A DNA stretch of 64,000 bases from Syncephalis fuscata S228 (GCA_025786725.1 JAHLTZ010000022.1:408435-472434); one strand, 5' to 3'; shown: positions 18,411 to 64,000, numbered from the stretch's first letter. Program-made: numbers and translations. The notes: generated from the letters alone by a model not told the origin.

Positions 18411-21400
18411 CTAGGCAAGAATATGCGCTAGCTCTCTATCATCAATTTCTTGCTGGCGTTTGTGTATGAGTTCACACAAGTGCTCGTAGACCAGCCAGGG
18501 AAACGAGAGACGATCGCCGTATTCACCAGCCAATGCACGTTCCGATGGCTCATACGTCACGTAATACCAAGCCGACGCCTTACTACGAATTGCTTCTTGA
18601 ATATGTTCGGGAAAGGGAGCCTTTTTTGATACAGATGATGAAGTAGCAGCAGCAGTAGTAGCCGTGTTAATAGATGATCGGGCCATCAAGTCTTCAAGTC
18701 GTACATTAACAGCACCACCATTATTAGCTGGTTTCGCATCAATAATTGCACTTTCTAGTGGATCAGCCTCTGTAGCAACGGCTTCTTTAAATTCTTCCAT
18801 AAAGTTTCGTTTAAATCGAGCTTCAATACCACTAACAAGCTCCATGACTTGCTGACGCAAATGATAATCACGGCGTTGGAACGCATCTTGGAATTGAATG
18901 ACCCAGCCGCTAATCGCTTCCCATTCAGTAGCAATGCCAAACTGCTTCATCACCCCATCAATTGCTTGATCGTAGTCATGTTTTAGTATGCGTGCTTCTT
19001 TAAGAAATATTTCATAGCCATTAGCTAGCATTCGTTCATCGATTTGTGCATTGTCGTCCGGTTTAAACTCTTCAAGAGTAATTGCATCATAAATCTTGCC
19101 TAGTACTGTCTCAGAATGATACATTGGCTTATCAGACTTTTCCATAAAATGTGGATAACTACGTGGTCTTAATGCACGTTCAAACTCGGCTGGAACACCT
19201 GTTTTTGGGAAATCTACGGCAATTGAATGTAGCTGTGCAAGTCGAATACATGTGCCATGTCGTGCACCATTTGTTAATTGATCAGCCTGTGCAAGATGGG
19301 CATGGGCAATCATACCAAGATTGTCGTATAAAATATAATTGACAAAGAACTAATAATAAAATGAAATGATCAGTGTTAATAACGTTAATAGCCAATTTAT
19401 TCATTTTTACCCTTTTAATATCTCTAATATCAATATTCTCTTTGGTTGGTGAGGTTGGCGGTGTATTGTCCATGGGTTTAAAATCAGCTTCTGGTAATAA
19501 CTTTGGGTCCCAAATACATCTATTACATCAATAATCATAATAATAATAATTGTTAATACCATCTATTATATCTATTAAATATTTTAACTTACGTAAATTC
19601 ATCGCCATCTAAATCACCACCACTACATTGACTTGGTACATCGCGGTCACCCTTTTGACTAAATACAATAACGTTTTTTAAATGTCTTAATTCTGGCTTA
19701 TCAACTGCTGTTAGCAAACGAATATCGCCAGGATGGAAACATGGATTTCTTGTAACGGCACATGGACCAGTAGGTACGTAAGGCTTTTCATAAGCTGGAT
19801 GATCGTATTGAAGAAATATTTCGTGTGGTTCTAGGATATTAAATTCATCCATTACACCAAGTAGCATAACACTTTGTTCAATGGGTATTTTTGCCTTGCG
19901 TTTCAGTTCACGCAATTGGCAGGCCCGGAATACACGTAGTAGATTGGCTAGATACGTTTCATGTTTATCAAGTAGACCAGCCCGTAACATGGCCACCATA
20001 CGATTGACCGTTTCGTATTCATCGCCTGATTGTTGCAATAAACGAATGGCCGTCTCACGCTCGTTCATGGCCCGATTAATACGATCCATCATTTCCGTCA
20101 TACGATTAAGTATAACATTACCATCCACACCTAAACATGTAAGTAAAACAATAATCTGTCGATTAAGTGCACCAGCAGTGTAGTTTGCTACTCGAATGAC
20201 TTCAAGAGCCCGATGATCTGATTTAAATTTACACTGACTGTCACGATATTCAATACGTCGTAGTGTCGATGATAGTGGCGGATGTAGACTCAGTACACCT
20301 TTGCAGCCACCAAGTCTAAACTGGACTGCACTTGGTAGCTCTTTAAGGCCCATCTTTTCTTCAACGGCCCTAGCAATTGCTAATGACATACGACCAACAC
20401 CATCCGAGAATGTATAAGCGCCATCAGTAGTAATAATATCGGGAATACGCTTTAGCTCTTTAGGTTCTAGTTCAATAGTCATTCTTGTACTAGAGAAACA
20501 CTGGCCCATACGTGCGGCTAGCTTGCCAATAATCTTATAGTCTGAAAAGTCACCCATCCATTCACGGATTTGATCGGCAGTAATGCCATTATCGCCTTGT
20601 TTAGATGCAATAAACCAGCAGCCATATTCTCTTAGCTGAGAGGATGAAAAGGCCAGAAACTCATAGTGTCGTCCACCTACAAGTATGCCACGTACTAAAA
20701 TACTGAATAAACGTCGAAATAGCATATCATGGGTTTTTTCTGCGCCACGAATACCGAATAGTGACTCATCCAAAAATTGGATACGTAATAGTCGATCAGC
20801 ATGTTGAGCAAATGACCTGACTACGCGATTTGACGTCTCCACCATCGGTTCAAGTACGTACATTTTTGTTGGTGTGACAACAACTTTAGGAATGGCCACA
20901 CAATAATCCGGTAATGCTGTACGGTTTGTATGTTCACTAATAATACGACCGGCACCTTCAATCCACGTATCTGTTGGCGTATCAGCTTCATATTCGTCGT
21001 CATCTGCATTATAAGGATCCTCATCTGATTTCAATCGACTAATTTCACGTTCAAGCAGCTCATTTATATTATCGGTATCGCGCATTCTATGGACAAGATT
21101 ACGTAAAGCATGTTCAGCAACGCCGTTATCAACATTATTAGCCAATAAGTTTAAAAACTCTTCATCAATAGCATGTTCCGATAAACGTCGTTGTGTAATA
21201 TACTGTTGAAGCCGATACTGTACGGGAAATGACTTGGCACCTAGTGTAGCCAACTTGGACTGGCTAATCTTCTTCCATGGATATTCAAATGGATCATAGG
21301 TGACGTTTAGATCGAGTTGCGTATAAAACGATAATGTTTCCTCAGCTCTAGTACCATTTCTTGACATTGCTGTATCAGTTGTTGTTTTGTCGTTATTTTT

Positions 21401-23454
21401 AACAGTGGCTGGAATGCCTTGTAAAGGATTCATACGCGCATCTTCATTATCAGCCAAATGACGAAGTCCAAATATCTGCGCATTCTTTAGCGTATTAAGA
21501 AATGTTTGACCATCTGATCGTCGATTTGATCCAAAATTAAACTGAAGCCGATAATCTAACCAGAACCAAACAGCACCAATCCTCTGTCTTCATCATGCGG
21601 CAATACTTCAAATGGCTCAGTTTTTGAAGATTGAGGCACTGGCTGCATTCTAATATGCACTACACGTTGCCAGGCATTGTCGCGATTGTAGGTGCCTTCT
21701 TTGTTCGTGCTTGTACTTTCAACACGCTTCTCCAGCCGTTCGACCAATGGTGGCCGTGTTAATTTTAGTAACAACGTAACACTTTGTGGTGGATCTGCAT
21801 CATCGCGCATATTACGTATAGTCTGATCGTTACGTTGAATACGGAACCAACAAGGTGCATCTTTACACCGTAGTTCCATTCTAAAGTCTATGCCATCAAA
21901 TGTAAACTCCAGCTGTACTCGGCCTTTGTTTGGATCAATGGCCATTCGAACACTGCCATCCGGCTCCCAACACGATAGATAGACACCACGACGCGGCTCA
22001 GATCCCAGTTCTAACGAGTCAGCTGTAAATCGCTGCCATCCTATGCCGCTACCTTCTTGTCGTTGATTGTTCGGCAATTGCTCTTGTGGTGGCTGAGTAA
22101 GAAAGCGTGGCAGCAATACTTCTCTCGAAGCACATTCTTCGTCAATCCTACGATGCTCGTCAATTTCTTGATCGCTCATCGCATTGACCCATACTGAACT
22201 GTTGCAAATACTTATACTTAGTGCTTCTGTTCGCTCAATCAATTTTCGAATTATAGTATGAGGGTTTGGACTTATAGGCATATAACAAATGGCACCTCGA
22301 CCCGTATGTCTACTAGCACTTGTATGACCGCCGGTATTTGTCTTAAGATCAAGACGAGCACTATAGAGATTACCAAATTCGCTAAATACTTTGACTATGT
22401 CTTGTAAATTGGCTTGTTCTGGAACACCTCGCAGTGAAATAAGTAAACAGCGCGGCATTCTTACAGTTGTTCTTGTAGATGGAGGCGAATAAGCTGATTG
22501 TTCTGGTCGAGAAGAATAGGAATTACGGCCATTTCTTCTATCGGTGTTATGTTCTGAGCGTCTTGAAAAACGTCTTTCTTCTTCCTGGTTAAGCTGTTGT
22601 CGATATCTATCTATCATATCGCTAAATAATTGATCATTTTATTACATTTAATTAGCACTATTAACGAAAATAATAAACACACCAACTTACAAGCTTATTT
22701 CTGGCGGCTGATTGTCAATTTGTTTGCCATGTTCATCGCTATCATTTATCTGTCTCTCTTGGTGCATTTGACGGAATACAGTTGAAACGCGCGCAATTCG
22801 CCTTGTTTGATTATTGGGTGCAGGTGGACTGCGAACATTATTGCGAATTGTTGCCTCATTGTTGGATTGTTGATTATCGTCTTCGTCTTGAGAAGATGAT
22901 CCATACTGATTTGATCGAATTATTGGTGATCGAGGCTGATCTCTTCTAACAAAACTAATATCCTGTTGGGCATTATAAATATTATTATTGTATATTGGCG
23001 CGCGATTCTCGCCATTCAATCGATCTAGTCTCTCGTCGTATTGAGTGTCATTATGTGAATTATGGCGTTCTCTGTTATACTCTGCTGGCTCGTCATATAG
23101 TCGAGACTGATAATCGTAACTGGCGTTGTTGTTCGAATTAGCTTGCGTAGAATTGAAGCCATTTCGTGGTCTAGTAGCTTGTATTTGTCGAGGGTCAGTC
23201 TGCCGTACAGGCATACCGTCGACCCATATAGTTGTAGAGCCATAGCCAGACGTTGGCCTTGGGTTGCTGCTAGATTCGGCGTGCCGACCATTTACATTGA
23301 AAGATGCTGGTGGCGATGAAGGTTGCGCACGACGCGCTGTTCCGTCACGGCGACAGCTAGGCAGCTGGTCGACAGTTTTACCAAGCTGCGCTGCGAGCAT
23401 TTCACGAAGATCATCGTCGTCTGATGAGCTATCAAAAATATCTGGTAAATCCAT
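18411..23454 (-). CDS. Cellular RNA-dependent RNA polymerase (RNAi; QDE-1/SAD-1/RDR family), multi-exon
   Basis: FSSSQLR, AARMGQCFSST, FSDGVG, QFRLGGCKG, RNPCFHPGD, catalytic SGGDLDGDEF, AVDFPKTG. RRM-like segment in the 21556-22617 exon. Frameshift near 21565. Confidence 0.95.
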
Positions 23455-27072: not shown

Positions 27073-29541
27073 TTAAAAGCTCATTTGCGACAGCGTGGCC
27101 CAACTTCGTCGTGCACCAGCCATGGCATCGACCATTGAAGAACGCCAAACATTTCGTTGATTGTTTGGGCCATTCTCAGCCAGTTCTGGATTACGGCCAC
27201 CACCCACAAGTTTTGTAGGACTTGTTCGTGGTGAAGATGGCAACGAAGTAGTACTAGAATTATCGATGGTAGTGATACCATTTTCTGTAGTTGTCGCTAA
27301 TACATTGCGTGAAAGATCAGGCGCCGATTTACGCTTTGAACAGCCGTCGATGATAGAACCAGCAAGACTGCTATGTCCAGCAGAGGTGTTATTAGCACCG
27401 ACAGGCTGTGCTACAGTATGTGCACCATGTACTGGTAAAGTGGCAGCACCTTGCACACCAACACGTGCCAAAAACATACGCATTCGGTGTCGTAAAATAT
27501 CGTGATAGATTTGTTCAGGTTTAGCACGGATAAGACCACGACGCATAAGGCGCACGTAAGCCCAGAATTCACACGCAGACACAAGACGAAGTCGGCAATC
27601 GGCACAGATTAATCGTTGTGACTGCGATGTTGTGTCATTTTGACGTGTTGTAGCATCACGTTCGCCTTCTAAAAAAAGACGATGACTGGACTCAGGTGGG
27701 CATGGACATTCGCAAAGCGTACATGGCGGTTGAAATGTTGAGCCTGGCGAAGTAAGCATTGTTTGATAGGCAAACAATTGTCTAGCATCCGACAAAGCAA
27801 CTGGTTCAAGAATTAGAGTGCCTGACTGAACACCTGTGTGGATTTTACGCTGTAAAAAGTAACCAGCACGATCAAATCGTACACATGGCTCGACATCGTC
27901 GTTTTGGCAACGACGTAAGAATTTTGAATTGCCTGTCGTTACCGGCTCAACTGCCAGGGATGCTGTTTCCACTAACGTCTTATTAGGTATACCATTTGAA
28001 TAGCCAATGTTAAGTACATTTGCTTCTCGTAAGCACAAACGATAAAATTCTTCAAAGTCCGTGTAACGACGACCTTTCAACTCAAAAGCAAGTAGAGCCG
28101 CAACTGGATCGATAAACGAGGTTACAGTTGGTGAGTTAATATCCGAACCATAGGCACTATCAGTACTTGGCAATGAGCCTAAAGAAGCAATGGATCCATG
28201 GGCGGCATGTCGGGCTACCGTTAATGATGGCTTCTGTGTTGCTACATCAGTAGTACCACTATTGCTGTCAGTTGTTGATGCAATAGCTGTATTATTCTGA
28301 TCGCCATTTGATTGTTGCTGTTGCTGCTGCTCTGTTGCACTAACTGTAGACATAGCCTTTTCCATCATTCGTTTCAAGTCGTTTAATTGAGCCTTTAACA
28401 TTTGCTCAACATCTTGTAGTTCTTGTACACGAGCAAAGTATGAATCACGTTTGCGTTCAGCTTCAGCGCGTGCACGGCGTTCATCGACCACCATCTTTTG
28501 GGCCTCTTCAAACACAGTACGCGACAAATCTTCTAGTTGAGCCTCAATGCTTGCCTTTGCATTTTCAAGTTCACCACGACGACGTGTTTCGACCACAAGC
28601 TTTTCAGAGGTTCGTTGCAGTTCAGATCGTAACTGTTCAATAAGAGTTTGTGATGTTTGTGGCTCATCTGGCTGTGTAAAAGCACCAAGTGTATTTGGCA
28701 TGCCAGTAGATGTAAAAGTTGTCAAATCATTCAGCGTGTGTTGATTACCAAACTCTTGACGGTGCTGCGGTGCTGGTTTAGAAATAGTCGAGTTAAGACG
28801 AGCATCATACGATGTAGTATGTGCGATGCCCGTGTTATTTAATGAATAGTTGGTGGTGTAATCCGACTGATGATGCTGGTCATCATGTTCGTCTTCATCA
28901 TCTGTCACATCGTCAGTAGCAAATTCCTTCTCTGCCTGCTCTTCCATCGATGATAGTTGCGCACAACGAATGGGTGATAAAGGCATTGAGTCTTGATCTA
29001 TACCAATAGGTGTGACAGGACGTAAAAGAGCAAGGCGCATTTCAGCCTCACGTAATTCTTGCTCAATACGAATACGCTCTTCTCGTAGCGTATCCACTTC
29101 TTGTCGCCAACGATCATTTTCTCGTTGCATTGATTGTTGTATCCACTCAAGTTCATCACATCGAGCGGCCAATTGCGCCGTATGTGCAGCTAAAGGACTA
29201 TCGTGTCCATCAATTAAATGATGGGCTTGAGCTATGGCTGATGATGGTGCAAAATTCAATGTACCTGCTATTACGGGTACTGAAGCAATTGAAGAAGACC
29301 TTGAACGAGATGATGGATAGTTTGAATTGTCGGCGTCGGACAACGCGCTTATGCTAGTCGATCGATGAACTGGCAATGGCGTGGGTGGCAATAAACCAGT
29401 ACTGCTACTCAATTGCATTGTTGAACCACGTTGCCAACAAGTAGAAGATGAGTGTGGCAATGGAATAGTAGCTGCTGCTGTTGTAGCTGCTGCTGTAGTA
29501 GTAGTCGTAGCCATTGTTATCGCTATTGTGGGTTCATCCAT
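27073..29541 (-). CDS. SEC2: Rab GDP/GTP exchange factor Sec2
   Basis: Coiled-coil Sec2 signature IEAQLEDLSRTVFEEAQKMV. C-terminal CQNDDVEPCVRF, CTLC and CADCRLRLVSACEFWAYVR. Confidence 0.88.
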   Translation of the reverse strand: MDEPTIAITMATTTTTAAATTAAATIPLPHSSSTCWQRGSTMQLSSSTGLLPPTPLPVHRSTSISALSDADNSNYPSSRSRSSSIASVPVIAGTLNFAPSSAIAQAHHLIDGHDSPLAAHTAQLAARCDELEWIQQSMQRENDRWRQEVDTLREERIRIEQELREAEMRLALLRPVTPIGIDQDSMPLSPIRCAQLSSMEEQAEKEFATDDVTDDEDEHDDQHHQSDYTTNYSLNNTGIAHTTSYDARLNSTISKPAPQHRQEFGNQHTLNDLTTFTSTGMPNTLGAFTQPDEPQTSQTLIEQLRSELQRTSEKLVVETRRRGELENAKASIEAQLEDLSRTVFEEAQKMVVDERRARAEAERKRDSYFARVQELQDVEQMLKAQLNDLKRMMEKAMSTVSATEQQQQQQSNGDQNNTAIASTTDSNSGTTDVATQKPSLTVARHAAHGSIASLGSLPSTDSAYGSDINSPTVTSFIDPVAALLAFELKGRRYTDFEEFYRLCLREANVLNIGYSNGIPNKTLVETASLAVEPVTTGNSKFLRRCQNDDVEPCVRFDRAGYFLQRKIHTGVQSGTLILEPVALSDARQLFAYQTMLTSPGSTFQPPCTLCECPCPPESSHRLFLEGERDATTRQNDTTSQSQRLICADCRLRLVSACEFWAYVRLMRRGLIRAKPEQIYHDILRHRMRMFLARVGVQGAATLPVHGAHTVAQPVGANNTSAGHSSLAGSIIDGCSKRKSAPDLSRNVLATTTENGITTIDNSSTTSLPSSPRTSPTKLVGGGRNPELAENGPNNQRNVWRSSMVDAMAGARRSWATLSQMSF

Positions 29542-31825: not shown

Positions 31826-34490
31826 TTAACCGCTGCACATCATACAAGCATCCTTGTTGTCAAGTGAGCACTGGAGTCGCATAGCATCGGTAATATCGTC
31901 GGCATTGCTACCATCGATGCTTGCATCTCCTTTCTCTTCGCCATTTGTGTTGCTTGACATTGCTTTGAGTGACTGTTGATCAACGGTGAATTTGATGGCA
32001 TCGACAGCGGGACGTGAACGCAAATAGTACATGCCTGTCTTGAGTCCCTTCTTCCAGCCGTAAAAGTGCATTGAAGTTAGCTTTGCATAGGAAGGCTCGG
32101 CAATATGGATGTTAAGCGATTGAGACTGATCGATAAAGGCACCACGATCGGCTGCCATATCAAGCACGGCCTTTTGCGATATTTCCCATACAGTACGATA
32201 AAGCTGGCGGATTTCATCAGGTATACCAGGTGCACGTTGTACCGATCCATTATCGGCAATAATACGGTTCTTCATCTGATCGTTCCATAGACCCATTTCA
32301 ACAAGATCTTTAAGTAGCCATGGATTGACAACTTGGAATTCACCGGCCAAAACACGCCGTGTATAGATGTTGGATGTGTATGGCTCGAAGCATTCGTTAA
32401 ATCCAAGGATCTGTGAGGTTGATGCAGTAGGCATTGGTGCAACGAGCAATGAGTTGCGGACACCATGTTTTTGGATACGTTCGCGCAATGGCTCCCAGTT
32501 CCATTGATCGGTAGGCGTGACATTCCACATATCGTGTTGTAGAATGCCTTGTGAGACTGGGAGTCGGCGTAAGTCTCATAGGTGCCGTAAAGTTCGGCCA
32601 ATTCGCTCGATGACTCGAGTGCAGCGTGGTAAATCGTTTCAAAGATGCGCTTATTAAGTTCGCGGGCCTTTGGTGATTCAAATGGCATGCGCATCTTAAT
32701 AAATGTATCGGCCAATCCTTGAACACCAAGACCAATAGGACGATGGCGCATATTCGACTTGTGTGCTTCAGGTACTGGGTAGTAGTTGACATCGATAATC
32801 TTGTTCAAATTACGCGTAACGACCTTTGTAACCGAGTGGAGTTTCTCAAAATCATATGTATCGCGATCGATGACAAATGACGGCAAGGCAATACTTGCCA
32901 AGTTACAGACGGCAACTTCATCGGGTGATGAGTACTGGACAATTTCCGTACAAAGATTGCTGCATTTAATCGTACCAAGGTTCTTTTGATTCGACTTTTG
33001 ATTACAGCTATCTTTATACAGCATATACGGCATTCCTGTCTCTGTCTGGGCATCAATAATGGCCGACCATAGCTTTTGGGCCTTTATTGTCTTGCGAGCT
33101 TTGCCTTCCTTTTCGTACGATTCGTATAGACGCTATGTATCGTATTATTAGCATAACTTAATAAAAAACTGTTTACAATACTATTTAGCTTATTCATAAT
33201 ATACTTACGACAAATTCATCGCCATAGCAGTCTTGTAGGCCGGGACATTCATGTGGACACATAAGCGACCAGTCACCGTTTTGTTCAACACGTTGCATGA
33301 AAAGGTCGGGTATCCACATAGCGTAGAAAAGATCACGAGCTCTTGCCTCTTCTGAGCCGTGGTTTTTACGCATGTCGAGTATTTGGAATACATCTGCGTG
33401 CCATGGTTCAAGATAGATGGCAAATGCGCCAGGTCGCTTATTGCCACCTTGATCGACGTAGCGTGCCGTGTTATTGTAGACACGTAGCATTGGTACAAGT
33501 CCATTTGAATAGCCATAAGTACCGGCAATATATGAGCCAGATGCACGAATGTTATGCACGTTAAGGCCAATGCCGCCGGCTGTCTTGGAGATCATAGCAC
33601 ACTGCTTTAGCGTGTCGTAAATGCCTTCAATCGAGTCATCGGCCATGGTCAACAAGAAGCAGGACGATAGCTGTGGGCGTGGTGTACCGGCGTTAAAGAG
33701 TGTCGGCGATGCATGGGTAAAGTAACGTTCAGACAATAAATGGTACGTTTCAATAGCGGCATCAATATCCTTGCCATGAATGCCGACAGCAACACGCATA
33801 AGCATATGTTGTGGTCTTTCAACGGTGCGGCCATTCAGCTTCAATAGATAGGACCGTTCGAGTGTTTTAAAGCCAAAAAAGTTGTAGCTAAAGTCACGGT
33901 CGTAAATAATAGCCGAATTTAAACGTTCAGCATTCTCTTTTACAACTTGATACGTCAATTCCGAAATCATTGGAGCTGGTAGGCCGGTTTTGGGGTTGAT
34001 ATAAGTGTATAGATCTTCAACGACCTGTGAAAATTGCTTCTTGCTTTCTTTATGCAAGTTTGAAATAGCAATACGGGCAGCAAGAATGGCATAGTCCGGA
34101 TGCTTGGTCGTCATATAGGCGGCAGTCTCTGCGGCAAGATTGTCGAGTTCAACGGTCGTTACGCCTTGGTAGACACCAGAAATAACCTAGTACAGGCCAG
34201 ATATAGTCAGTGATAAAATTTTATTACTAAGCAATCAATACTGCCAATAACTTATCGCACTTTGACACTTTACATACCTTTTGAGCAATTGCTGCTGGGT
34301 CGACATAGTTTGTATCGAGTCCATAGCAAAGCTTAACAATACGAGCCGTGATTTTATCAAAGGCCACCTTCTCGGTATGTCCACCTAACAAACAATCAGC
34401 GAGCCAATCAATATTCATATTAGTTTATTACTATAAAACAAATAGGTTTATATTTAGCTGTAACTACTTACCTCGTTTAACGACAAACAT
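31826..34490 (-). CDS. RNR1: Ribonucleoside-diphosphate reductase large subunit (3 introns, one apparent frameshift near 32560)
   Basis: MFVVKR start, ATP cone, [37 protein letters not shown]-terminal CMMCSG. Confidence 0.97.
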
Positions 34491-47522: not shown

Positions 47523-49102
47523 TTAATTCTTTGGTCGCCATCGTGCACCATATAAATAAACTAATGCTGGCAATATACTACTAACTGAAAAGACCAGTGC
47601 TATGATTGTAAATGTCCAACCATTACCAAGTGAATCAACCATTTGAACAGCAAAAAGCGGTGTGATAGAAGCGAGCACTGCGCGTACAAAATTAGCCAGA
47701 CTAACTACAGATGCTGATCTTGACGTAAACGCATCAATTAAATAAACATTGACTACAGTATTGCTAATCATTAAGCCAATAGACACTATAATAATAGTGT
47801 TGTTAGCACTAAGCTATATCATTTAAACAATTCCACTTACTAATGAATGTTCCAATCAATGGTGTAAACCAATGAAAATTGGCATTTAAAAACCAGCCAT
47901 ACCTGTTGGAAACAGTTAGTTACTATTATGGTGTTGCTTAATAAACTTACAATAGAAATCCAAGTGGTGTTAAAATTGCCGAGGGCCATAATGCAATTAA
48001 ACGTACTTCAGCAGGTGGTTTCTCTTGTCTTTTGGCCTGCTCCTTGGCAAGAATGTAGTCGGCGTATTTCCCGCTAATTATTGTTCCAGTAATATTCCTA
48101 AGCCACTGGCTAAAAACGTTAAGCCAACCTGAGTCGTTGTAAATCCATACTGATTGATGAATGTGCGAGGCAATATAGTGATAAGCAAATACATAAAGCC
48201 AAATGCTATTCCAGGATATAGCATAGAAAATGTGACTGCTGGGAAGCGGAAGAAAATCAGCGGTCGAATTGGATTGAAACGACCTGACTTTTGGCGCATT
48301 TCTTTGTATAAAGTCTCGGGCATGGATAATACGTTAACAATGAGTGCCAAGCCACCTAATCCAGTCAGTAACCAAAAGATACTGTGCCATCCATGATATT
48401 GATTTAGCACACCACCAATTATTGGGCCTAGAATAAAGGTGTTAGTTAATATATACTATATTCTAATAGACTACATACCAATAACTGGGCCAATAAGAGG
48501 TCCAAGTAAAAAATAGCCCATTTTACTGCCTCGTTCGTGAATGTGGAAAACATCTGCAACACTTCCTGCACCAACGGCTGTGGCAGCCGACGAGCTACTT
48601 GCTTGGAGTATCCGCATAACGAGCAAAAGGCCTATACTGTTTGAAAGAGCGCATCCCACTGAAGTAAGAACGTACAATGCCAAAGAGACAATGTAAATTG
48701 GACGGCGGCCAAGTCGTTCCGAGAGTGGTGCCCAGACCATGGGTGCTATACCATAGAATAAAATGAAAAGTGAAACTGTAAGATTTACCATGGTGGTGGT
48801 GGTGTTTAAGTTTGTGGTAATATCCAGCAGTGCTGGTACATAGATGGTACTTGAAAGCGGGCCAAAAAAACCTGCTAACCCAGCTTGAAATAGAATCCAG
48901 TTCTTTTTTCGTTGGCTGAAAGCATTCACCGGAAGGTGTTCATCGTTGCCAGCTACGATATCTGATGCCAATGCAGGATTGGCATGCTTGGTGTCAATAC
49001 TAGGAACGGCAATAGCTACAGATGATTCAACTAGCAACAGAATTAGTAACCTGGTCGTTAATAAATGATTTCCTATTTACCTGTTTCTGTGTTAGCCGCC
49101 AT
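47523..49102 (-). CDS. MFS DHA1-type multidrug/polyamine transporter, multi-exon
   Basis: SSTIYVPAL, WAPLSERLGRRPIY, GAGSVADVF..ERG, GPLIGPVIG, YLIDAF...ASVVSLANFVR. Confidence 0.9.
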
Positions 49103-51320: not shown

Positions 51321-51820
51321 TATATTTTTGAATAAACAGTTAATTTTGTTGTCAATATATATAATTACAATATCTGCATTTAACGTTGATATATTCATAC
51401 TATCTTATGCTTATAACTAATACAATATAATTGCAAATGTCTTTAGTTAGTTTGACTAATAATTAATAATTATTGGATGCAAATAGAACATGAGTATAGA
51501 TATAACAATTCGATTGTATATAGCTAAAATGAACCACAAGTTTATTACTATAAGCTTGCACAGTTGAATAGAAACAACTAAATGCAAGCCTGTTGATAAA
51601 ATAATATCCCATTGATTAAAGACTGGATAAACCGGAGCATTGGCCAAAACTTGATATATAGATGACTGAATGGCGTAGTTGTCAAATAGTCTTGCATTTC
51701 ACCGAATATATACCTAAAGTGTGTTAAAATAGTGGTTTGATTGCACTACCAATGCTGATGTCTTGAAAGCACCTATTGTCCTGTGTTTACGAATAAAAAT
51801 ATTACATGTCCTATAATTAA
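51321..51820. repeat. ~500-bp near-identical duplicate (copy 1), the 3' end/UTR of micro-exon gene A
   Basis: Matches 58569-59070 almost base for base. Confidence 0.95.
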
Positions 51821-54800
51821 TTTTATAGGTTAACAATATATAATACTACTTACATTCTATTAATATTAAACAATTAATAAGTACATTTCATGGTATAAAA
51901 TTAGCACATAATCAGTTAATACAAAATACAACTTACTTTCTATTATATTAAGTTGTTGATATACAGAATACATAGTATATAATTAGTCTATGCTCTATTG
52001 ATATACAATGCTACTTACCGCCTATTAGTATTAAGTTGTTAATACACATGGTGTATAGCATGTGGTTAGTGCATATTCAGTTAATATACATTACCACTTA
52101 CAATCTATTGATAATAAGTCATTAGTACAATCAACAAATAGTAGGCGATTAGTTTATAGTTAATTAATATACAATACAACTCACAAGCTATTAAGATTAA
52201 GTTATTGGTACGCACAGCACATGGTACATAATTAGCGCATAATCATGTAGTATACAATACGACTTACTTTCTATTATATTAGGTTATTGATACACACAGT
52301 ACATGAATATAATCAGCGAGTAATTAGTTAATATACAATATAACTTACTGCCTATTGGTATTAGATTATTGGTACACATGGTGTATAACACGTGGTTAGT
52401 GCGTAATCAATTAATACACAATACAACTTACACTCTATTATATTAATTAATTGGCACAATTAGTAAATAGCATCTGATTAATGTATAGCCAATTAATATA
52501 TAATGCCACTTACTTTCTATTATATCGAGTCATTGGTACATACAGTACACGGCACATAGTTAATGTATAATCAATTAATATACAACGTTACTTGCCCACT
52601 ATATATTAAATCATTGATACACACAGTGCACGACACATAATTAATGAATAATCAGTTAAATACACAATACAACTTACTGCCTATTATGTTAAATTGTTAA
52701 TGTACGCAGTGCATAATATATGGTTAGTGTATAGTCAGTTAAAATACAATACAACTTACATTCTAATAATATCAAGTTGTTGGTACACAGATTACATAGA
52801 TATAATTAATGATTAATTATTTAATATATAGTATTACTTACCGCCTATTATATTAAGTCATTGATACACACAATGTACAATATAAAATTAAGATATAGTC
52901 AGTCAATATACAGTAAAACTTACTATCTATTAATATTAAGTTGTTCATACACACAGTACATGAGATATGATTAGCGTATAGTCAATTGATATACAGCACA
53001 ACTTACATGCTATTAATATTAATATATCGATACACAAAGTACGTGGCATATAGTTAATAAAAAGTTAGTTAATGTACAATACAACTTACTGCCTAGTATA
53101 TTAATTATTATATACACAGTACATGGTATATAATTAGTCTATGTTCTATTGATATACAATGCTACTTACAATCTATTATATTAAATTGTTAATATACACA
53201 GTACGTGGCATATAATTAGTGCATAGTAAGTTGATATAACATACAAATTACCAGCTATTAACATTAAATCATTGATACGCACAGTGCATGATATATAATT
53301 AGCACATAGTCAGTTAATATACAATATAACTTACTGCCTATTAGCATTAAGTCATTGGTGCACACAATACATGACATATACTTAGTGCATATTTAGTTAA
53401 TATACAATACCACTTACAAACTATTAATAAGTTATTGGTACAATCATTAAATAGTATGTGATTAATGTATAGTTAATTAATATACAATACCACTTACTTT
53501 CTATTGTGTTAAGTTGTTGGTGCATATAATACATAATGTATAATTAGTTTATAAGCCAGTAATATACGATGTTACTTACGGTCTATTATTATTATTAAGT
53601 TGTTAATGCATACAGTACATGGCATATAATTAGCGCAGTCAGTTAATATACAATACAACTTACGACCTATTAGTATTGTCATTGGTGCACACAATATATG
53701 ACATATAATTAGTACATATTTAGTTAATATACAATACCACTTACCATCTATTATATTAAGTCATTGGTACACAAAGTACATGACACATAAGTAGTACATA
53801 TTTAGTTAATATACAATATAACTTACTATCTATTAATAATTCATTAGTACAATCAACAAATAGTATGTGATTAGTGCATAGTTAGTTAATATACAACACA
53901 TCTTACCGCCTATTATATTGCGTCATTTATACACATAGTGCATGGCATATAATTAGTGCATAGTCAGTTAATATGCAATACCACTTGCCCCCTATTAATA
54001 TTGATTCATTGATACACATAGTACACGACATATAATTAGTGCATAGTCAGTTAATATACAATACCACTTGCCCCCTATTATATTAAGTTTTTGGTGCATA
54101 TAATATATAATGTATAATTAGTTTATAAGCCAGTAATATATGATGCTACTTACGGCCTATTATTATTAAGTTGTTAATGCACATAGTATATGGCACATAA
54201 TTAGCGCACATTCAGCTAACATACAATACCACTTACTAGCTATAATATTAAATTGTTGATGCGCACAACACATGGCATGTAATTAGCGCAGTCAGTTAAT
54301 ATGCAATACAACTTACGATCTATTATATTAAGCCATTGGTACGCGCAGTACATGGCGCATAATTAGTACATATTTAGTTAATATACAATATAACTTACTA
54401 TCTATAAAATTAAATTGTTCATACACATAGTACATGGCACATATTAGGACATATTTAGTTAATGTACAATACAACTTACTGCCTATTATATTAAATTATT
54501 AATATACACAGTACATGGTATATAATTAGTCTATGTTCTATTGATATACAATAGGACTTACAAGCTATTAATATTAGGTTGTTAATGCACACAGTACGTG
54601 ACATATAATTAGTGCATAGTAAGTTGATATAACATACAAATTACCAACTATTGATATTAAGTGTTAATGTACACAGTACATAGTATATAATTAGTTTATG
54701 TCCTATTGATATACAATAGAACTTACGACCTATTAGTATTAAGTCATTGGTGCACACAATACATGACATATAATTAACACATATTGAGTTAATGTACAAT

Positions 54801-55956
54801 ACCACTTACCACCTATTATATTAATTTTAATATACACAGTACATGGTATATAATTAGTCTATGTTCTATTGATATACAATAGGACTTACAAGCTATTAAT
54901 ATTAAGTTGTTAATGCACACGGTACATAACACATGATTAGTGTGTGGTCAGTTAATACAAAATTCCACATACAAACTATTGATATTAAGTGTTAATGTAC
55001 ACAGTACATGGTATATAATTAGTCTATGTCCTATTGATATACAATAGGACTTACAAGCTATTAGTATTAAGGTGTTAATACACATGGTGTATAGCATGTG
55101 ATTAGTGCATATTCAGTCAATATACAATATCGCTTACGGTCTATTATATTAAGTTGTTAATATACACAGTACATGGCATATAATTAGTGCATAGTCAGGT
55201 AATATACAATTTTACTTGCCCACTAATATATTATATTGTTGATACACACAACACAATATATAATTAGCGCATATTCAGTTAATATACAATACCACTTACT
55301 ATCTATGGAATTAAGTTGTTTATACACACAGTATATAGCATATAATTAGTATATAGCCGGTTGATATACAATACAACTTACTGCCTATTACATTAAATTG
55401 TTGCATACAGTACATGGTATATAATTAGTCTATGTTTTATTGATATACAATAAAACTTACAAACTATTAATATTAAATAATTGGTACAATCAATCAATAA
55501 CATCATCAATGTATGGCCAGTTAATATACAATACAACTTACAGCCTATTAATATTAAATAATTGATACAATTAGCAAATAGCATCGTTAATGTATAACCA
55601 ATTAATATGCGAATAACTTACGATCTATTAGTATTAAGTAATCGATACACACAGCACACGGCATATAATTAGTGTATAGTCGGTTGATATGCAATATAAC
55701 TTACAGCCTATTAATATTATTTATTAATGAATATAATATATAGTATATAATTAGCGAGTAATTAGTTGATACATAATATAACTTACGCTCTATTATAATC
55801 ATTAGTTAGCAATATTATTGGTAAGCAAATTCTATGGCATATTTATTGTTATTACAACATACCACGACGAACTAAGGCTGGCTTAGCATCCACCATGGCT
55901 GTACTGGCCACAAGCGCCACGACGATAGTGCAAATGACGGCAATAGAAAGCTTCAT
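51809..55956 (-). CDS. Micro-exon gene A: secreted Cys-rich peptide precursor (about 80 aa) built from a 94-nt leader exon, 49 three-nucleotide exons and a terminal exon
   Basis: Exon 1 (55956-55863) encodes MKLSIAVICTIVVALVASTAMVDAKPALVRR+G and is followed by gtatgt. Then 49 units of tag|NNN|gtaagt-like. The joined product is ERYRFCNMDPFSCGLACNNPSRGGDNGHQICTDCTYSECMEKCKTYCEK, then T+GA stop if the acceptor at 51811 or 51781 is used. Confidence 0.85.
51811..55862 (-). repeat. Tandem array of ~82-bp units (one ~79-nt intron plus one 3-nt exon), 49 micro-exons
   Basis: Plus-strand consensus ...TTAATATACAATACAACTTAC-NNN-CTATTATATTAAGTTGTT..ACACAGTACATGG.ATATAATTAG... recurs every 79-84 bp with no gap. 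Confidence 0.95.
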
Positions 55957-56084
55957 GGTGATATTGATTTGTTGAGACAAACAAATAAAAAAGATAGTAG
56001 AGTGTGGTTGGTATAGAGTGGGGAGTAGTGTGTGTTTAGAAAGAAGTAGAGTGTGATGATGATATCGCAGTTGGTTGTGTATAT

Positions 56085-56102
56085 TTTGTGAGCTATTTAT
56101 AC
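56085..56102 (-). promoter_or_regulatory. Putative TATA block of micro-exon gene A
   Basis: TATAAATAGCTCACAAAAT on the minus strand, about 140 bp upstream of the ATG. The block is conserved at the same position in paralog B (about 60626-60643, TTTAAATAGCTCACAAAAT). Confidence 0.45.
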
Positions 56103-56282
56103 TTATGATTATGCTGAGATGCTAGTATACTGTAGTATACGAAATATACTATTACTGTGTAGTATGAACCAATAAAACAATCCAAATAATGGTTTGAGGT
56201 GCACATGTACCAATAGATTCATGGTGTGACATCATGGTTTCCAGCCTTGAGTTTAACATACTTGGTCTTGATTTTAACCTGA

Positions 56283-58568: not shown

Positions 58569-59070
58569 TATATTTTTGAATAAACACAGTCAACTTTATT
58601 GTCAATAGATAATTACAATATCTGCATTTAACGTTGATATATTCATATCATCCTATGCTTATAACTAATACAATATAATTGCAAATGTCTTTAGTTAGTT
58701 TGACTAATAATTAATAATTAATGGATGCAAATAGAACATGAGTATAGATATAACAATTCGATTGTATATAGCTAAAATGGAACCACAAGTTTATTACTAT
58801 AAGCTTGCACAGTTGAATAGAAACAACTAAATGCAAGCCTGTTGATAAAATAATAATCCCATTGATTAAAGACTGGATAAACCGGAGCATTGGCCAAAAC
58901 TTGATATATAGATGACTGAATGGCGTAGTTGTCAAATAGTCTTGCATTTCACCGAATATATACCTAAAGTGTGTTAAAATAGTGGTTTGATTGCACTACC
59001 AATGCTGATGTCTTGAAAGCAGCTATTGTCCTGTATTTACAAATAAAAATATTACATGTCCTATAATTAA
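58569..59070. repeat. ~500-bp near-identical duplicate (copy 2), the 3' end/UTR of micro-exon gene B
   Basis: Matches 51321-51820. Confidence 0.95.
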
Positions 59071-60498
59071 CGTATAAGCCATTAATATACAATAAAACTT
59101 ACTGCCTATTAATATTAATTTGCTTATACATAAATTCAATAGCAAGCGCTTAGTAAATGGTCAATGAATATAATGTGGCACTTACAGCCTATTAATATTA
59201 AAATGTTGATACATATTAAATAACATGTAATTAATGCATAATCAAGTCATATAAAATATCACTTACGAACTATTATATCAAGTTGTTGATACACACAGTG
59301 AATAACATGTAATCAGTGCATAGTCGGTTAGTATACAATGCTACTTACCCACTAATATATAAAGTTATTGATACACACAGTACATAGTATGTAATTAGTA
59401 AATGGCTAATTGGTGTATAATCCCACTTACTGACTATTATGTTAAATTATTGATACACATAGTATGCCACACATTTACTAAATAATCAGTTAATATACAA
59501 TACTACTTACGACCTATTGATGGTGAGTTATTGATACACAGTAAATAGTACGTAATTAGTACATAGCCAATTATTATGTAACCTCACTTACCGCCTATTA
59601 CATTAAGTTGTTGATGCACACAGTAAATAGCAAGCGATTAGCGGATTATTAATTAGTATGTAATATTACTTACCACCTAATATATTAAGTTGAAAATATT
59701 ACAGTAAACATCACACAATTAATAAGTTATTACTTTATACACAATATAGCTTACAACCTATTAATATTAAGTTATTAATGAATACAGTAAATAACATGCA
59801 GTTAGTGTATAGTCAATTATTATGCAATGCTATTTACCAGCTATTGATATTAAATCATTGATAGGCACAGTATACCGTATTCGATTAGTACATAGTTAGT
59901 GTGTGTGTAATATCACTTACGGGCTTTTTATATTAAATTATTGGTATACACAAGATATAGCATGTGATTAGGGAATAGTCAATCAATATACAACACCGCT
60001 TACGCTCTATTGATACAGAATTGCCGATACACGCAGTACATAGTATATAATTAGTATATAGTTAAGTACTATAGAATATCACCTACCAGCTATTAAATTA
60101 AGGCATTGATACACATAGTATATAGCATTTAATTAATAAGCACTTGCTTAATATATAATATCGCTTACTGGCTATTATATTAAATTATTGGTATACACAA
60201 TAAATAGTATATAATTAGTGAATATTCAATTAATATACAATACTACTTACGACCTATTAAGCCAAATTGTCGATACACGCAGTACATAGCATGTAATTAG
60301 TATATAGCAGGCTATTATAAAATGCTACTTGCCGTCTAACACCATAATCAGTTAAGCATAATATTAGTAAATATGATGTTATATTTATTGTAATTACAAC
60401 ATACCACGACGGGCTAGAATTGGATTAGCATCCACCATGGATATAGTGGATATAAAAGCCACAATAATGGTACAAACGACGGTAATAAAAAGCTTCAT
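59023..60498 (-). CDS. Micro-exon gene B: secreted peptide precursor from a 94-nt leader exon, 16 three-nucleotide exons and a terminal exon
   Basis: Exon 1 (60498-60405) encodes MKLFITVVCTIIVAFISTISMVDANPILARR+G and is followed by gtatgt. The 16 micro-exons give DGPTEPPGCGGLMVRC, then RQ* (acceptor 59031) or RHVIFLFVNTGQ* (acceptor 59061). Confidence 0.8.
59061..60404 (-). repeat. Tandem array of ~82-bp intron+3-nt-exon units, 16 micro-exons
   Basis: Same CTTAC-NNN-CTA periodicity (80-83 bp) as array A, with more diverged units. Confidence 0.93.
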
Positions 60499-61801
60499 GG
60501 CGATATTGATTTGTTAAAACAAACAAATAAAATAGGCAATAGAATGTAATTGGGATAGAGTAAATAGTAGTGGGGGTTTGGCAGAAAGTAGAGTATAATG
60601 ATAATACCACTGGTTAGTTGTGTGTATTTTGTGAGCTATTTAAATATGTGTTTACATTGAAGCATCAATATATATATATATGTTATGCCATTGACATGCA
60701 ATATGGACCAATAACAATGCATCTAAATAGTGACTTGAAATACAAGTATGCTAACACATTGATAGCATGCTGATATGCATTCGTTTTTGTTTCAATTTGC
60801 CCGCATCTACATAGTTAGCGTAGCAATATCAATAATTCAGTACACATGTGATAAAATCATGCACGTCAACCTGTATTTTCTTGTTATACAGTTGTCTATT
60901 TGGTGGAAATTAATGTGATGTTTTATAAAAACAACAATAACGCCTTTGCTATTGCTTTCACCGACTCAGTATTCAATATCTACACACATAACAGGCAGCA
61001 TGCAACACCAACATAACAACTAGTTTAATACATTAAACTGGTATTTTTATACAAGTATTTACTGCTATACATAAACTAATCGTAACCTGAATTATAAAAT
61101 ATACTTGTTGGTTTATATATGCATTCAATTTGGTATAACAGCTGCTTTTACAGAAATAGCCAATATACTGGACTGACAATGCACTATATTCAGGCGTATC
61201 ATGTCACCTGTGCGATTATCTTCATTCCAAATAACAGATCATCTAAATAATCTGAAAATAGACTGTATAATGAGTACTATTATACTATAATGCAGCATGG
61301 TATTTCCAACAATAGACCATTCCAACAAGTCTCGGCTGTTATCAATTTCTTGGCTGTAAAGTAGATTGCATCGGGTATACTACATGTAATACAATATACA
61401 AACACTAGACTAAATACACTAGATGATTCTAGTCAAATATCATCAACGTCGAGTGCATAATGGCAATGAATTGCACATCAGGCAGTAATTATCCAGTACC
61501 TAGTTAATGCCCAGCACTTTTGAAAAATGACTCTGACAACAAATCAATTTGTCTTTGGAAGAACAGAGTATAAACCAATGAAAAAACAGTTGACAGTACA
61601 AACTGATTGCTTTGGCTTTATAGCAAAGTTTATAAAAAAAGCAAGTCACTGTGACCATACTAAGTTAGATTGTATCTATTTGATATTTAACGGCTACTGA
61701 TGCAATTAAAAGACTGTTGTTTTATTTCATCTATACCTGCAAATGAACAATAAACTAATACTAAAGCTTTACAGCCAAAGTATCAACGCCAAAAGACATA
61801 A

Positions 61802-64000
61802 TTATAGCTTGGCACGATTCACGTTCGACTCGGTCCAGCTACCAATCTCACCCTTAATTAATGGACGAATATAATCATGATAGCCTCGAATAACACCATC
61901 TTTCATCTCGCTGTTGTTTAGTGGCTCGCGTTTAAGACACTCGACCATACGTTCGTAGGCCCGTCCATCGCTCGATCCAAGTGCCGAATTAAGCAAAAAG
62001 TCAGGCCAGCCATAACTTTCAGCCAAACCGACAGCATCTGGCCGAATAGCCCGCAGCAAAACACGAACTTCATTGCGAATGAGGTTCGCTTGATTCAACG
62101 ATACAAATCCATCTTCGACGAAATCGCCCATATCCTGTTCTATAGTATAGAGATGATAAAGATTCATTAGGCGAATAATGGCCGTTTGTGTTGCATTAGA
62201 TAAAGCGGCAAATTTATCACTTTCTAAATAAGCAGCAATACAGTGTGCCACCAAATATTGGCAATAGGCACGTGATGCGCGTAATGATTCAACTTGTAAG
62301 TCTTCCCATGCAATGCCGCTGTGTTTCGCCCGCGCCAACTCGGATACAACACGAGCTGCACGATGGGCATAAGCACAAAGAATCAACTCGTGATTTGTAA
62401 GATCTTGAGCTGATTGCACTGACCAACGTTGTTGCAAAAACAACGAAGGTTCCACCAATTGACGAAGGAAACTTGTGGTCGATGATAATGCATCTAGCTG
62501 TCCCTGGTGCACAAATTCAACTTGTTTCAACAAATACTTGGCCGATTGTTGCTATAAATAGCCATGAGTAATATTAAACTTGACCCTTCCATTAGCTTAC
62601 CGTAAGTAAATAGTTTTCACCCTCATAAGTATTACTAGGCAAGGATGTATTGTAGTAATCAGGAATACCCGAAAACATGGAGTATCTATAACAAATCAAT
62701 ATAAACAATAAGCAACCATGATTAATACTATTATTAATAATACAGCTATATAGCTTACCCGTGACCGCCCATACACTTGCGAAGGTCCTCAACACCTTCT
62801 ATCGCTACAGTGGTTGTGTAGCTCTTTAGGCCCGAGCTGTAGGCATGCACATCAGCCAACATACCCACATCATTATTTGCAAGCTGGGCCATTAATTTCT
62901 CGTACATCTCCAACATCCACATGCCAGTAAACCGTAAAGCATAGGTTTGAGCAACACGTGGGAAGACACGATACTGCACCATAAGATGATCAAGTGTTTG
63001 TGGCTCAAGTTGGCCGGGAGCTTTAACGGGACCTTGACGACGTACAGCAAGATAGCGTGTAGCTATAGTACAAGCACGCGAAAGAGTGACTGCAGAATTC
63101 TCGACCAATTCGACACGAACATAAGTCTATAGCCATAAATAAAATTAATATTTATCTGGTGGTCCATCTCTGTTACCTACCATAGCACCATAAGCCAATT
63201 TATTATGAATTGGTTTGTGTAGACACCATCACGTGATACTTTAGAGTAACGCATAAGCATATTCTCTCGTGGTACACGGTAATGATTAAACATCATAAAA
63301 CCATTATCCATATGTTAGCACCCACTTTTGGTCCAATATCATGAATAGTCAATCCAGGGAATGTTTTATGGTTGTCAAGCGATCGGATAGGCACAAATAG
63401 TGGATGTGCACCATAATCACGTCCATCGATAATAAGTTTGGCCACCACAATGGCGTGGGTCGCCGTCTTGCCAAGAGCACCAATCCAGAACTTTGCTGAC
63501 TATCATGTATTTACAAGTATTAGCCGTGACTATTGACTAGATAGATAGACTCACCGATAAATGAGGCGAGTGAATAACCCATTCATCTGTCGCTTTATCT
63601 AATGTAGCTGTGGTCTCTAGACCAGATAGGTTACTACCATGGCCTAATTCAGTCTGAGCATAGCTATTATTACAAAATAGTTAATTAAACGCTGAGAATA
63701 TGCCAGAATAGAATAATACTTGCCATCCAAGAATACGAAGCTGTTTTGCTAGTCCAAGCCATTTCGCTTGTTGTTCATCGCTCGCTTGCCCTTCAAGTGT
63801 TGGTATAAACATATCAGTGTGCAAATAGATCTATTATTATAACAATTATAATATTTAGTACCAATATGTATATATCTATAAAATATAAATAATAACAATG
63901 ACTACTCAAACTTACTGGCACATATTCATCACTGGCCAATCGAAGTGTATTTACATCAGTACTGGTCAAATTATGTTCATTTCTTAGTTCCATCATACGA
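61802..64000 (-). CDS. POX1: Peroxisomal acyl-CoA oxidase, 5' end outside the window
   Basis: [71 protein letters not shown]-terminal PTS1 AKL. Confidence 0.93.

Follow-up and report, generated by a model that had tools for sequence, protein, structure and literature searches.

Results

Structure of the locus

The window analysed here is a stretch of 64,000 nucleotides (nt) from the genome of Syncephalis fuscata S228 (GCA_025786725.1 JAHLTZ010000022.1:408435-472434), with positions counted from its first letter. Syncephalis species parasitise other fungi. Between 51570 and 56099 the minus strand carries gene A, in which a leader exon appears to be spliced through a long run of three-nt exons to a terminal exon, and which would encode a small, secreted, cysteine-rich peptide. 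The following features were assigned to gene A.

56078..56099, minus strand: family-conserved TATA-like promoter motif, 143 nt before the ATG
55863..55956, minus strand: coding part of exon 1, 94 nt, phase-1 end, leader-type reading of 31 residues
55790..55862, minus strand: intron 1, 73 nt, GTATGT donor; paralog RNA contigs end or join at 55863
51854..55789, minus strand: array of 49 three-nt phase-1 exons and 48 homologous introns
51781..51853, minus strand: last intron, 73 nt, family-conserved CAG acceptor
51570..51780, minus strand: terminal exon, two bases finishing the TGA and then the 3' untranslated region; lower end approximate, from paralog RNA depth

All 49 triplets listed in the initial annotation of this DNA were found in that order and at those positions, the first at 55789-55787 and the last at 51856-51854. 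The array units, AG-NNN-GT or AG-NNN-GC (n=49), are spaced 79-84 nt apart and the introns between the micro-exons measure 76-81 nt; altogether 50 introns interrupt a coding sequence of 243 nt. Translation bore out the proposed 94-nt exon 1 with its phase-1 end and its leader containing Arg-Arg (RR). Joined in phase 1, gene A gives 80 codons without a stop and with 8 Cys, all within the last 49, and a TGA is created at the last junction, exactly as had been proposed; the third reading frame of the joined sequence holds 5 stops. The whole product thus has 80 amino acids, 49 of which form the mature part, and each codon of the mature peptide is split 1+2 over an intron.

The beginning of the terminal exon, in contrast, had to be corrected. 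A start at 51809, as annotated initially, implied an acceptor AG at 51810, and this was rejected since it lacks conservation in the paralogs, while 51781|51780 is conserved in all complete paralogs and was seen in paralog RNA; the TGA is formed at the junction with both choices. A frame in which each micro-exon equals one codon was also considered. In gene A it runs through without a stop and yields a hydrophobic string lacking Cys, and across the paralogs it holds 1 Cys in 555 codons and 4 stops; it was rejected, being excluded by the phase-1 end of exon 1.

The introns display U2-type features, namely a GT or GC donor with U1-type consensus, a YAG acceptor and a branch-like motif. In gene A the invariant columns of the unit are the splice positions, TAG (49/49) and the donor G (49/49, in GT or GC), and the least conserved ones are the three exon bases, where the commonest base reaches 31-45%. 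The array introns have a mean mutual identity of 69%; 37 of the 48 contain a YTRAY branch-like motif 9-10 nt upstream of the acceptor end, a count which still includes the AT-rich background. The signature WYAG-NNN-GTAAGT was observed 50 times in the 64-kb window, compared to 0.47 expected.

The leader of gene A starts with a signal-peptide-like segment of about 24 amino acids ending in V-D-A (a signal peptide by composition), followed by a short pro-region which ends in RR. M1, K2, C9, A24, P26, R30 and R31 are invariant among 19 paralog leaders, RR being present in 19/19. A signal-peptide-like leader together with an invariant RR makes a Kex2-type cut after RR likely.

Members of the family

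Judging from sequence patterns, gene A is one member of an S. fuscata family of roughly 130-170 genes. This size is derived from two whole-genome counts, that of the leader-end pattern (187 matches vs 34 in the control) and that of the promoter motif (129 exact matches vs 0 in the control). Searched genome-wide, the signature WYAG-NNN-GTAAGT gave 4386 matches vs 311 in the control for a 3-nt exon; with 4-nt spacing it gave 410 vs 411 and with 6-nt spacing 574 vs 360. The genome is estimated to contain more than 4,000 three-nt exons of the array type.

About 30 distinct paralogs were parsed for exon structure. Of their 773 exons, 741 measure 3 nt and 22 measure 6 nt, the latter lying near the start in every case, while 10 have other sizes; GTAAGT stands at 545/640 donors. 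In complete paralogs a CX2CX3C motif close to the start and a CX3-4CX3C motif close to the end recur around a variable middle part, the number of Cys is mostly even in complete genes, and the exon chains keep their frame across 380-nt element insertions within introns.

Some members deviate from the common layout. Exon 1 is 97 nt long in L018:1639 and L020:1645, with three more bases before an intron-1-type donor. A subfamily (L022, L023, L031, L032, L038, L039) has a third exon of 15 nt, which builds a second dibasic site in some members; L031 encodes a Cys-free Ser/Gly-rich peptide and its introns are highly homogenised. In the second intron of L029 and the third intron of L034 the acceptor has changed to AA, and AAG abuts the donor, which means either skipping of the exon or a recursive site of zero length. 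A profile search with the leader exon returned 20 proteins, 19 from S. fuscata and one metagenome fragment. One protein, P0027, joins the family leader to a single von Willebrand factor C domain (SVWC, E 4.7e-7); use of the leader exon thus extends to folded domains.

Frame and splice-site statistics

Support for coding came from the junctions between micro-exons. In 42 uninterrupted runs, 513 junction-spanning codons could be read in the phase set by exon 1. None of them is a stop, whereas shuffling gave 28±3.9 stops (minimum 15 in 5000 shuffles), and 83 of them encode Cys, compared to 41±4.6 with the exon order shuffled. An exonic G precedes 12/15 of the GC donors vs 143/625 of the GT donors (p=6.5e-6), as would be expected of compensation under selection for U1 pairing.

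RNA evidence

Run X1, which is presumed to be RNA, was used as Logan contigs, and the family is among its most deeply covered sequences. The depth was 365,411 on exon 1, 91,369 on the terminal exon and 0-263 inside the array. Upstream of the coding part it drops from 22,642 at 56022 to about 160 at 56091-56108, therefore most transcripts start downstream of the TATA-like motif. Many contigs link 55863 to about 51768 with unplaced letters in between; in one contig 33 letters separate exon 1 from a terminal-exon start, and in a loose end after exon 1 27/32 letters agree, by eye, with the first ten exons of L030.

In four contigs, pieces of 6, 9, 9 and 15 nt are bounded exactly by the AG of an acceptor and the GT of a donor, and a further contig consists of exon 1, 9 letters and an intron. 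Since no internal exon of 9 nt occurs among the 773 parsed ones, the pieces are best read as partly spliced RNA, which suggests that splicing can start inside the array. The joints at 55863 and the AG/GT-bounded pieces support intron removal at the predicted ends for the family. The spliced mRNA of gene A itself, which the initial annotation had named as a check, was not seen in X1, where the depth at the 3' alleles particular to gene A (51726-51727) is close to zero.

Intronless sisters

In P0014, P0021 and P0018 the mature part is contiguous in the genome. The open frames for P0014 and P0021 (74 and 82 codons) exceed the length of the protein by five, hence intron 1 is missing from them as well. 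At two P0014 loci the promoter motif lies exactly 236 nt upstream of the mature start. Loci with a contiguous mature peptide include G000 C240:2662, C308:180381, C345:42488, C212:183174, C157:436190 and C24:718198, at least some of which are without any intron and still have the promoter motif.

Intronless and array paralogs have in common the leader, the promoter motif and the spacing CX2CX3C...CX3-5CX3C, and the Cys spacing of the exon-chain readings returns in P0014 and P0025. P0018 matches the exon chain of L025 at 9/13 residues (z 9.8, with a comparison set of 21 proteins). Simple retroposition was rejected as the source of these copies: the promoter motif is retained although most RNA starts downstream of it, hence they are not plain retrocopies. 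At least two subfamilies contain intronless copies; since the introns of their array-bearing relatives are homologous (64% mean identity from gene to gene), repeated loss via complementary DNA (cDNA) is more economical than repeated gain.

An insert resembling a short interspersed nuclear element (SINE) points to a reverse transcriptase in the S. fuscata genome. It is 325-397 nt long, has a tRNA-like head bearing A and B boxes and an A-rich tail, and is accompanied by a target duplication of about 14 nt. It was found in introns of L011, L012, L014, L021, L027, L030 (two), L033 and L035, always antisense and always in one register, some 19 nt from the beginning of the intron. Neither ARAGORN nor Rfam made a call on it.

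The model of one intronless sister is small and all-helical, with a predicted local distance difference test score (pLDDT) of 70. Its structural matches, including Jug r 2 vicilin-buried peptide (VBP), Luffin P1, VBP-10 and nigellin, had Z of 3.0-3.6, within background, and Foldseek with an intronless sister gave nothing useful.

Changes in the arrays

Within gene A, blocks of units are duplicated, as seen from the identity of introns 10/14 (96%), 12/16 (93%), 18/25 (91%) and 21/28 (92%). Paralogs differ by insertions and deletions of whole units, e.g. L007 has eight more exons than L028. Comparison between genes gave 81 non-independent pairs with an identity of 90% or more in each of the two flanking introns; here the introns differ by 4% and the exon bases by 23-27%, at all three positions. 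A swap of triplets by conversion or crossover within the intron repeats, combined with selection, would fit this better than point mutation alone.

Other features of the window

A second member of the family, gene B (59030-60498, minus strand), and ordinary genes share the window with gene A. The initial annotation had missed both gene B and the genome-wide family.

60621-60642, minus strand: TATA-like motif of gene B
60405..60498, minus strand: exon 1 of gene B, 94 nt, phase 1
59103..60335, minus strand: array of gene B, 16 three-nt exons
58603..59102, minus strand: last intron, terminal exon and 3' flank of gene B, 95% identical to 51354-51853 of gene A
304-1734, 18411-21457, 27073-29541, 33194-34114, 48471-49037, 61802-62533: ordinary neighbour genes

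The array of gene B with its terminal exon from 59030 gives a mature peptide of 18 residues with 2 Cys. Genes A and B are 95% identical over 500 nt at the 3' end and only 76% in the leader exons, and the 3' identity may reflect a recent conversion or a chimeric duplication. The neighbours are, in the order of the coordinates above, a GDA1/CD39 nucleoside phosphatase, an RNAi-type RNA-dependent RNA polymerase (RdRP), Sec2, ribonucleotide reductase (RNR), an MFS transporter and an acyl-CoA oxidase. The order RNR-Sec2-RdRP is common to the S. fuscata window and S. plumigaleata, whose syntenic locus, as compared here, ends short of the array region, and one window protein is 67-68% identical to proteins of Syncephalis plumigaleata and S. 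pseudoplumigaleata.

Discussion

A genuine spliceosomal gene

We put the probability that gene A is a genuine spliceosomal gene of S. fuscata, with its leader spliced through the run of 3-nt exons to the terminal exon, at about 90%, and the gene is very likely functional. The frame statistics, the compensation at the splice sites, the RNA patterns of the family and the intronless paralogs together support what the initial annotation proposed, a real, intron-riddled gene for a secreted Cys-rich peptide.

Several points weigh against this conclusion. The RNA evidence comes from a single run in one condition, and the transcript of gene A itself is missing from it. The deep full-length contigs could derive from intronless paralogs, whose discovery weakened them as a proof of micro-exon splicing. 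One 9-nt piece equals exons 16-18 of L026, but a match of this type has a chance of 2.3% per 9-nt string. The paralog runs share ancestry and so the p-values overstate independence, though the effect is large. The paralogs L021, L032 and L013 carry a frame-shifting 2-nt exon; they are probable pseudogenes or assembly errors. Finally, database searches were made with exon 1 and the natural intronless proteins as queries, and the intronless-sister peptides had no hit in Pfam, PDB or Atlas, the SVWC domain of the distant P0027 being the sole exception.

The arrays might also consist of real exons whose chief role is combinatorial alternative splicing, giving a library of peptides per gene as reported for the Tuber nank genes and the schistosome micro-exon genes discussed below; this is compatible with the genuine splicing of gene A, and as the chief role we regard it as rather unlikely. 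As all exons are phase 1-1 and multiples of 3, the frame would survive the skipping of any of them; a stop would arise in just 22 of 471 single skips, and Tuber offers a precedent. On the other hand, the conserved Cys spacing and the mostly even Cys counts favour the full chain as the selected product, the splice sites are near consensus at almost every exon, and no skipped isoform could be assigned from the X1 contigs.

It is improbable that gene A is silent or in decay, or that it stores single-codon cassettes, with the expressed peptides coming mainly from intronless or other paralogs. The near-zero depth of its 3' alleles in X1, the existence of intronless paralogs and the frameshifts in some array genes would agree with this, but the sites of all 50 introns are intact and the frame is open with 8 Cys, a combination with no stop that has a joint probability of 0.0036 when the exon order of gene A alone is shuffled; moreover a second copy, 98% identical to gene A, retains the first 7 exons, and X1 represents one condition only.

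A non-coding minisatellite containing AG-NNN-GTAAGT by chance can practically be dismissed: Tandem Repeats Finder does call the gene A array as an 82-bp repeat, and some metagenome arrays with a single repeated triplet may be plain satellites, but the exon-order shuffles and the excess of the signature over expectation reject a satellite or chance origin, and stop avoidance and Cys enrichment at the junctions, donor compensation, the fixed place of the array, with a conserved leader on one side and a conserved terminal exon on the other, the RNA pieces that end precisely at AG and GT, and the intronless homologues all contradict it.

Comparison with known systems

The initial annotation knew of no described gene with an entire mature peptide of uniform 3-nt exons, and as a claim of no precedent this was too strong. 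In Tuber melanosporum, NACHT-ankyrin (NLR) genes are reported to contain arrays of tens of codon-sized 3-bp exons (Iotti et al. 2012, doi 10.1016/j.funbio.2011.11.009, via PMC3689799, PMC4986451, PMC10197012, PMC13449251), thus the array idea itself is not new. According to these accounts, alternative splicing of the array exons varies one part of a large intracellular receptor (PMC3689799, PMC4986451, PMC10197012). The Tuber genes, as described there, resemble the S. fuscata family in being fungal, in forming an expanded family with tens of consecutive 3-bp exons and in their tie to biotic interaction. The S. fuscata arrays differ in making up nearly the entire mature part of a small secreted peptide, in phase 1 and with every codon split, and in belonging to a mycoparasite of the Zoopagomycota with more than 4,000 such exons in its genome and with intronless sisters. 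No NACHT or ankyrin domain is present in the S. fuscata family: with a whole product of 80 residues, the leader and terminal exons of gene A have no space for one, and the family proteins have no such Pfam hit.

In the micro-exon genes (MEGs) of Schistosoma mansoni, 10-20 exons, most of them 15 bp long within a range of 3-81 bp, alternate with introns of 0.1-5 kb (bioRxiv 10.1101/2023.06.21.545858). Like the MEGs, the S. fuscata genes would encode secreted parasite proteins from a signal-peptide exon (by composition) followed by symmetric micro-exons, which form the greater part of the coding sequence, and both groups are multigene and rapidly divergent; unlike in MEGs, 96% of the S. fuscata exons are exactly 3 nt, a gene can hold up to 49 of them, and its introns are short repeats (73-81 nt) homologous to one another. 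No sequence relationship between the S. fuscata family and schistosome MEGs was found, and none was expected. In Coprinopsis cinerea 27 exons of 3 nt occur in 26 genes (PMC12230235). Fungal spliceosomes can thus process exons of 3 nt or less, but there the number is about one per gene compared to up to 49 consecutive ones in S. fuscata. As for the product, CX3C pairs on two helices are also the arrangement of plant alpha-hairpinins and vicilin-buried peptides, which are disulfide-stapled helical hairpins, and the intronless-sister model is all-helical, whereas the S. fuscata peptides usually have 6 Cys with a CX2CX3C start and no sequence homology to them; on the model, the likeness is one of shared arrangement, not of membership.

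Our literature search found no micro-exons reported for Syncephalis or Zoopagomycota and no whole secreted mature peptide built from 3-nt exons, and to this extent the claim of novelty stands. It is a combination of features that sets the family apart from the known arrays: the secreted peptide is built in this way as a whole, its codons are split, the introns derive from repeats, the arrays occur on a genome scale and there are intronless derivatives.

A generic three-unit pattern identified at least 120 stretches in metagenomes. Twelve AT-rich arrays (incl. L044, L089, L141), with units about 95 nt apart and read in phase 1, hold 0 stops vs 7.4±2.1, and several of the AT-rich arrays precede a protein kinase exon. 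The kinase is of a type which we take to be that of arbuscular mycorrhizal fungi (AMF), and no description of such arrays with a kinase exon was found in the literature. Another 38 arrays of intermediate GC content, read in phase 0, hold 4 stops in 820 codons and comprise up to 59 three-nt exons about 70 nt apart; some of them lie downstream of NACHT (L053, L072) or GTPase-like (L058, L104, L118, L156) exons and extend the Tuber pattern to other fungi. L055, L116, L125 and L136 are further arrays of this phase-0 kind. L045, L079 and L131 have 33-50 units, all with one triplet, and may be plain satellites or homopolymer-coding arrays. The introns of the metagenome arrays look unrelated to those of S. 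fuscata, therefore the design seems to have arisen several times.

A possible mechanism and its meaning

The RNA of the family supports removal of the introns, apparently not in strict 5'-to-3' order. Each intron of about 79 nt would be recognised by intron definition, and for this reason exon size would hardly matter. The product would then be secreted, cleaved after RR by a Kex2-type protease and folded as a small, disulfide-stapled helical peptide, which would most probably act on host or competing fungi. In evolution the repeat unit would be an intron plus one codon's worth of exon, so that unequal crossover or gene conversion between look-alike introns could add, delete or swap residues in frame, and occasional recombination of a cDNA copy back into the locus would leave an intronless paralog in its native setting.

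In its widest form we offer this proposal tentatively, at somewhat less than even odds. The homologous 79-nt introns would serve as recombination arms which shuffle one-codon cassettes in and between about 150 secreted-peptide genes, alternative skipping would add somatic variety, and cDNA recombination would fix successful versions as intronless genes; the design would have more than one independent origin among fungi, with NLRs, GTPase-like genes and AMF-type kinases as cases from several lineages, and would be a general and almost wholly unannotated strategy at interfaces between organisms.

The public gene models of S. fuscata include intronless sisters yet appear to misjoin array genes (e.g. 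P0015 vs L025), and the metagenome scan suggests that such arrays are missed by annotation pipelines in many fungi. Gene A, with 50 introns and splice sites 3 nt apart, is an extreme test of splicing in which intron definition, order and fidelity are directly measurable. The family offers a concrete route to mass intron gain, tandem duplication of an intron plus 3 nt, and one-step total loss within the same family, and its layout could allow single amino acid swaps. For the biology of the organism, it exposes a hidden secretome in a mycoparasite, which is a source of candidate antifungal or effector peptides.

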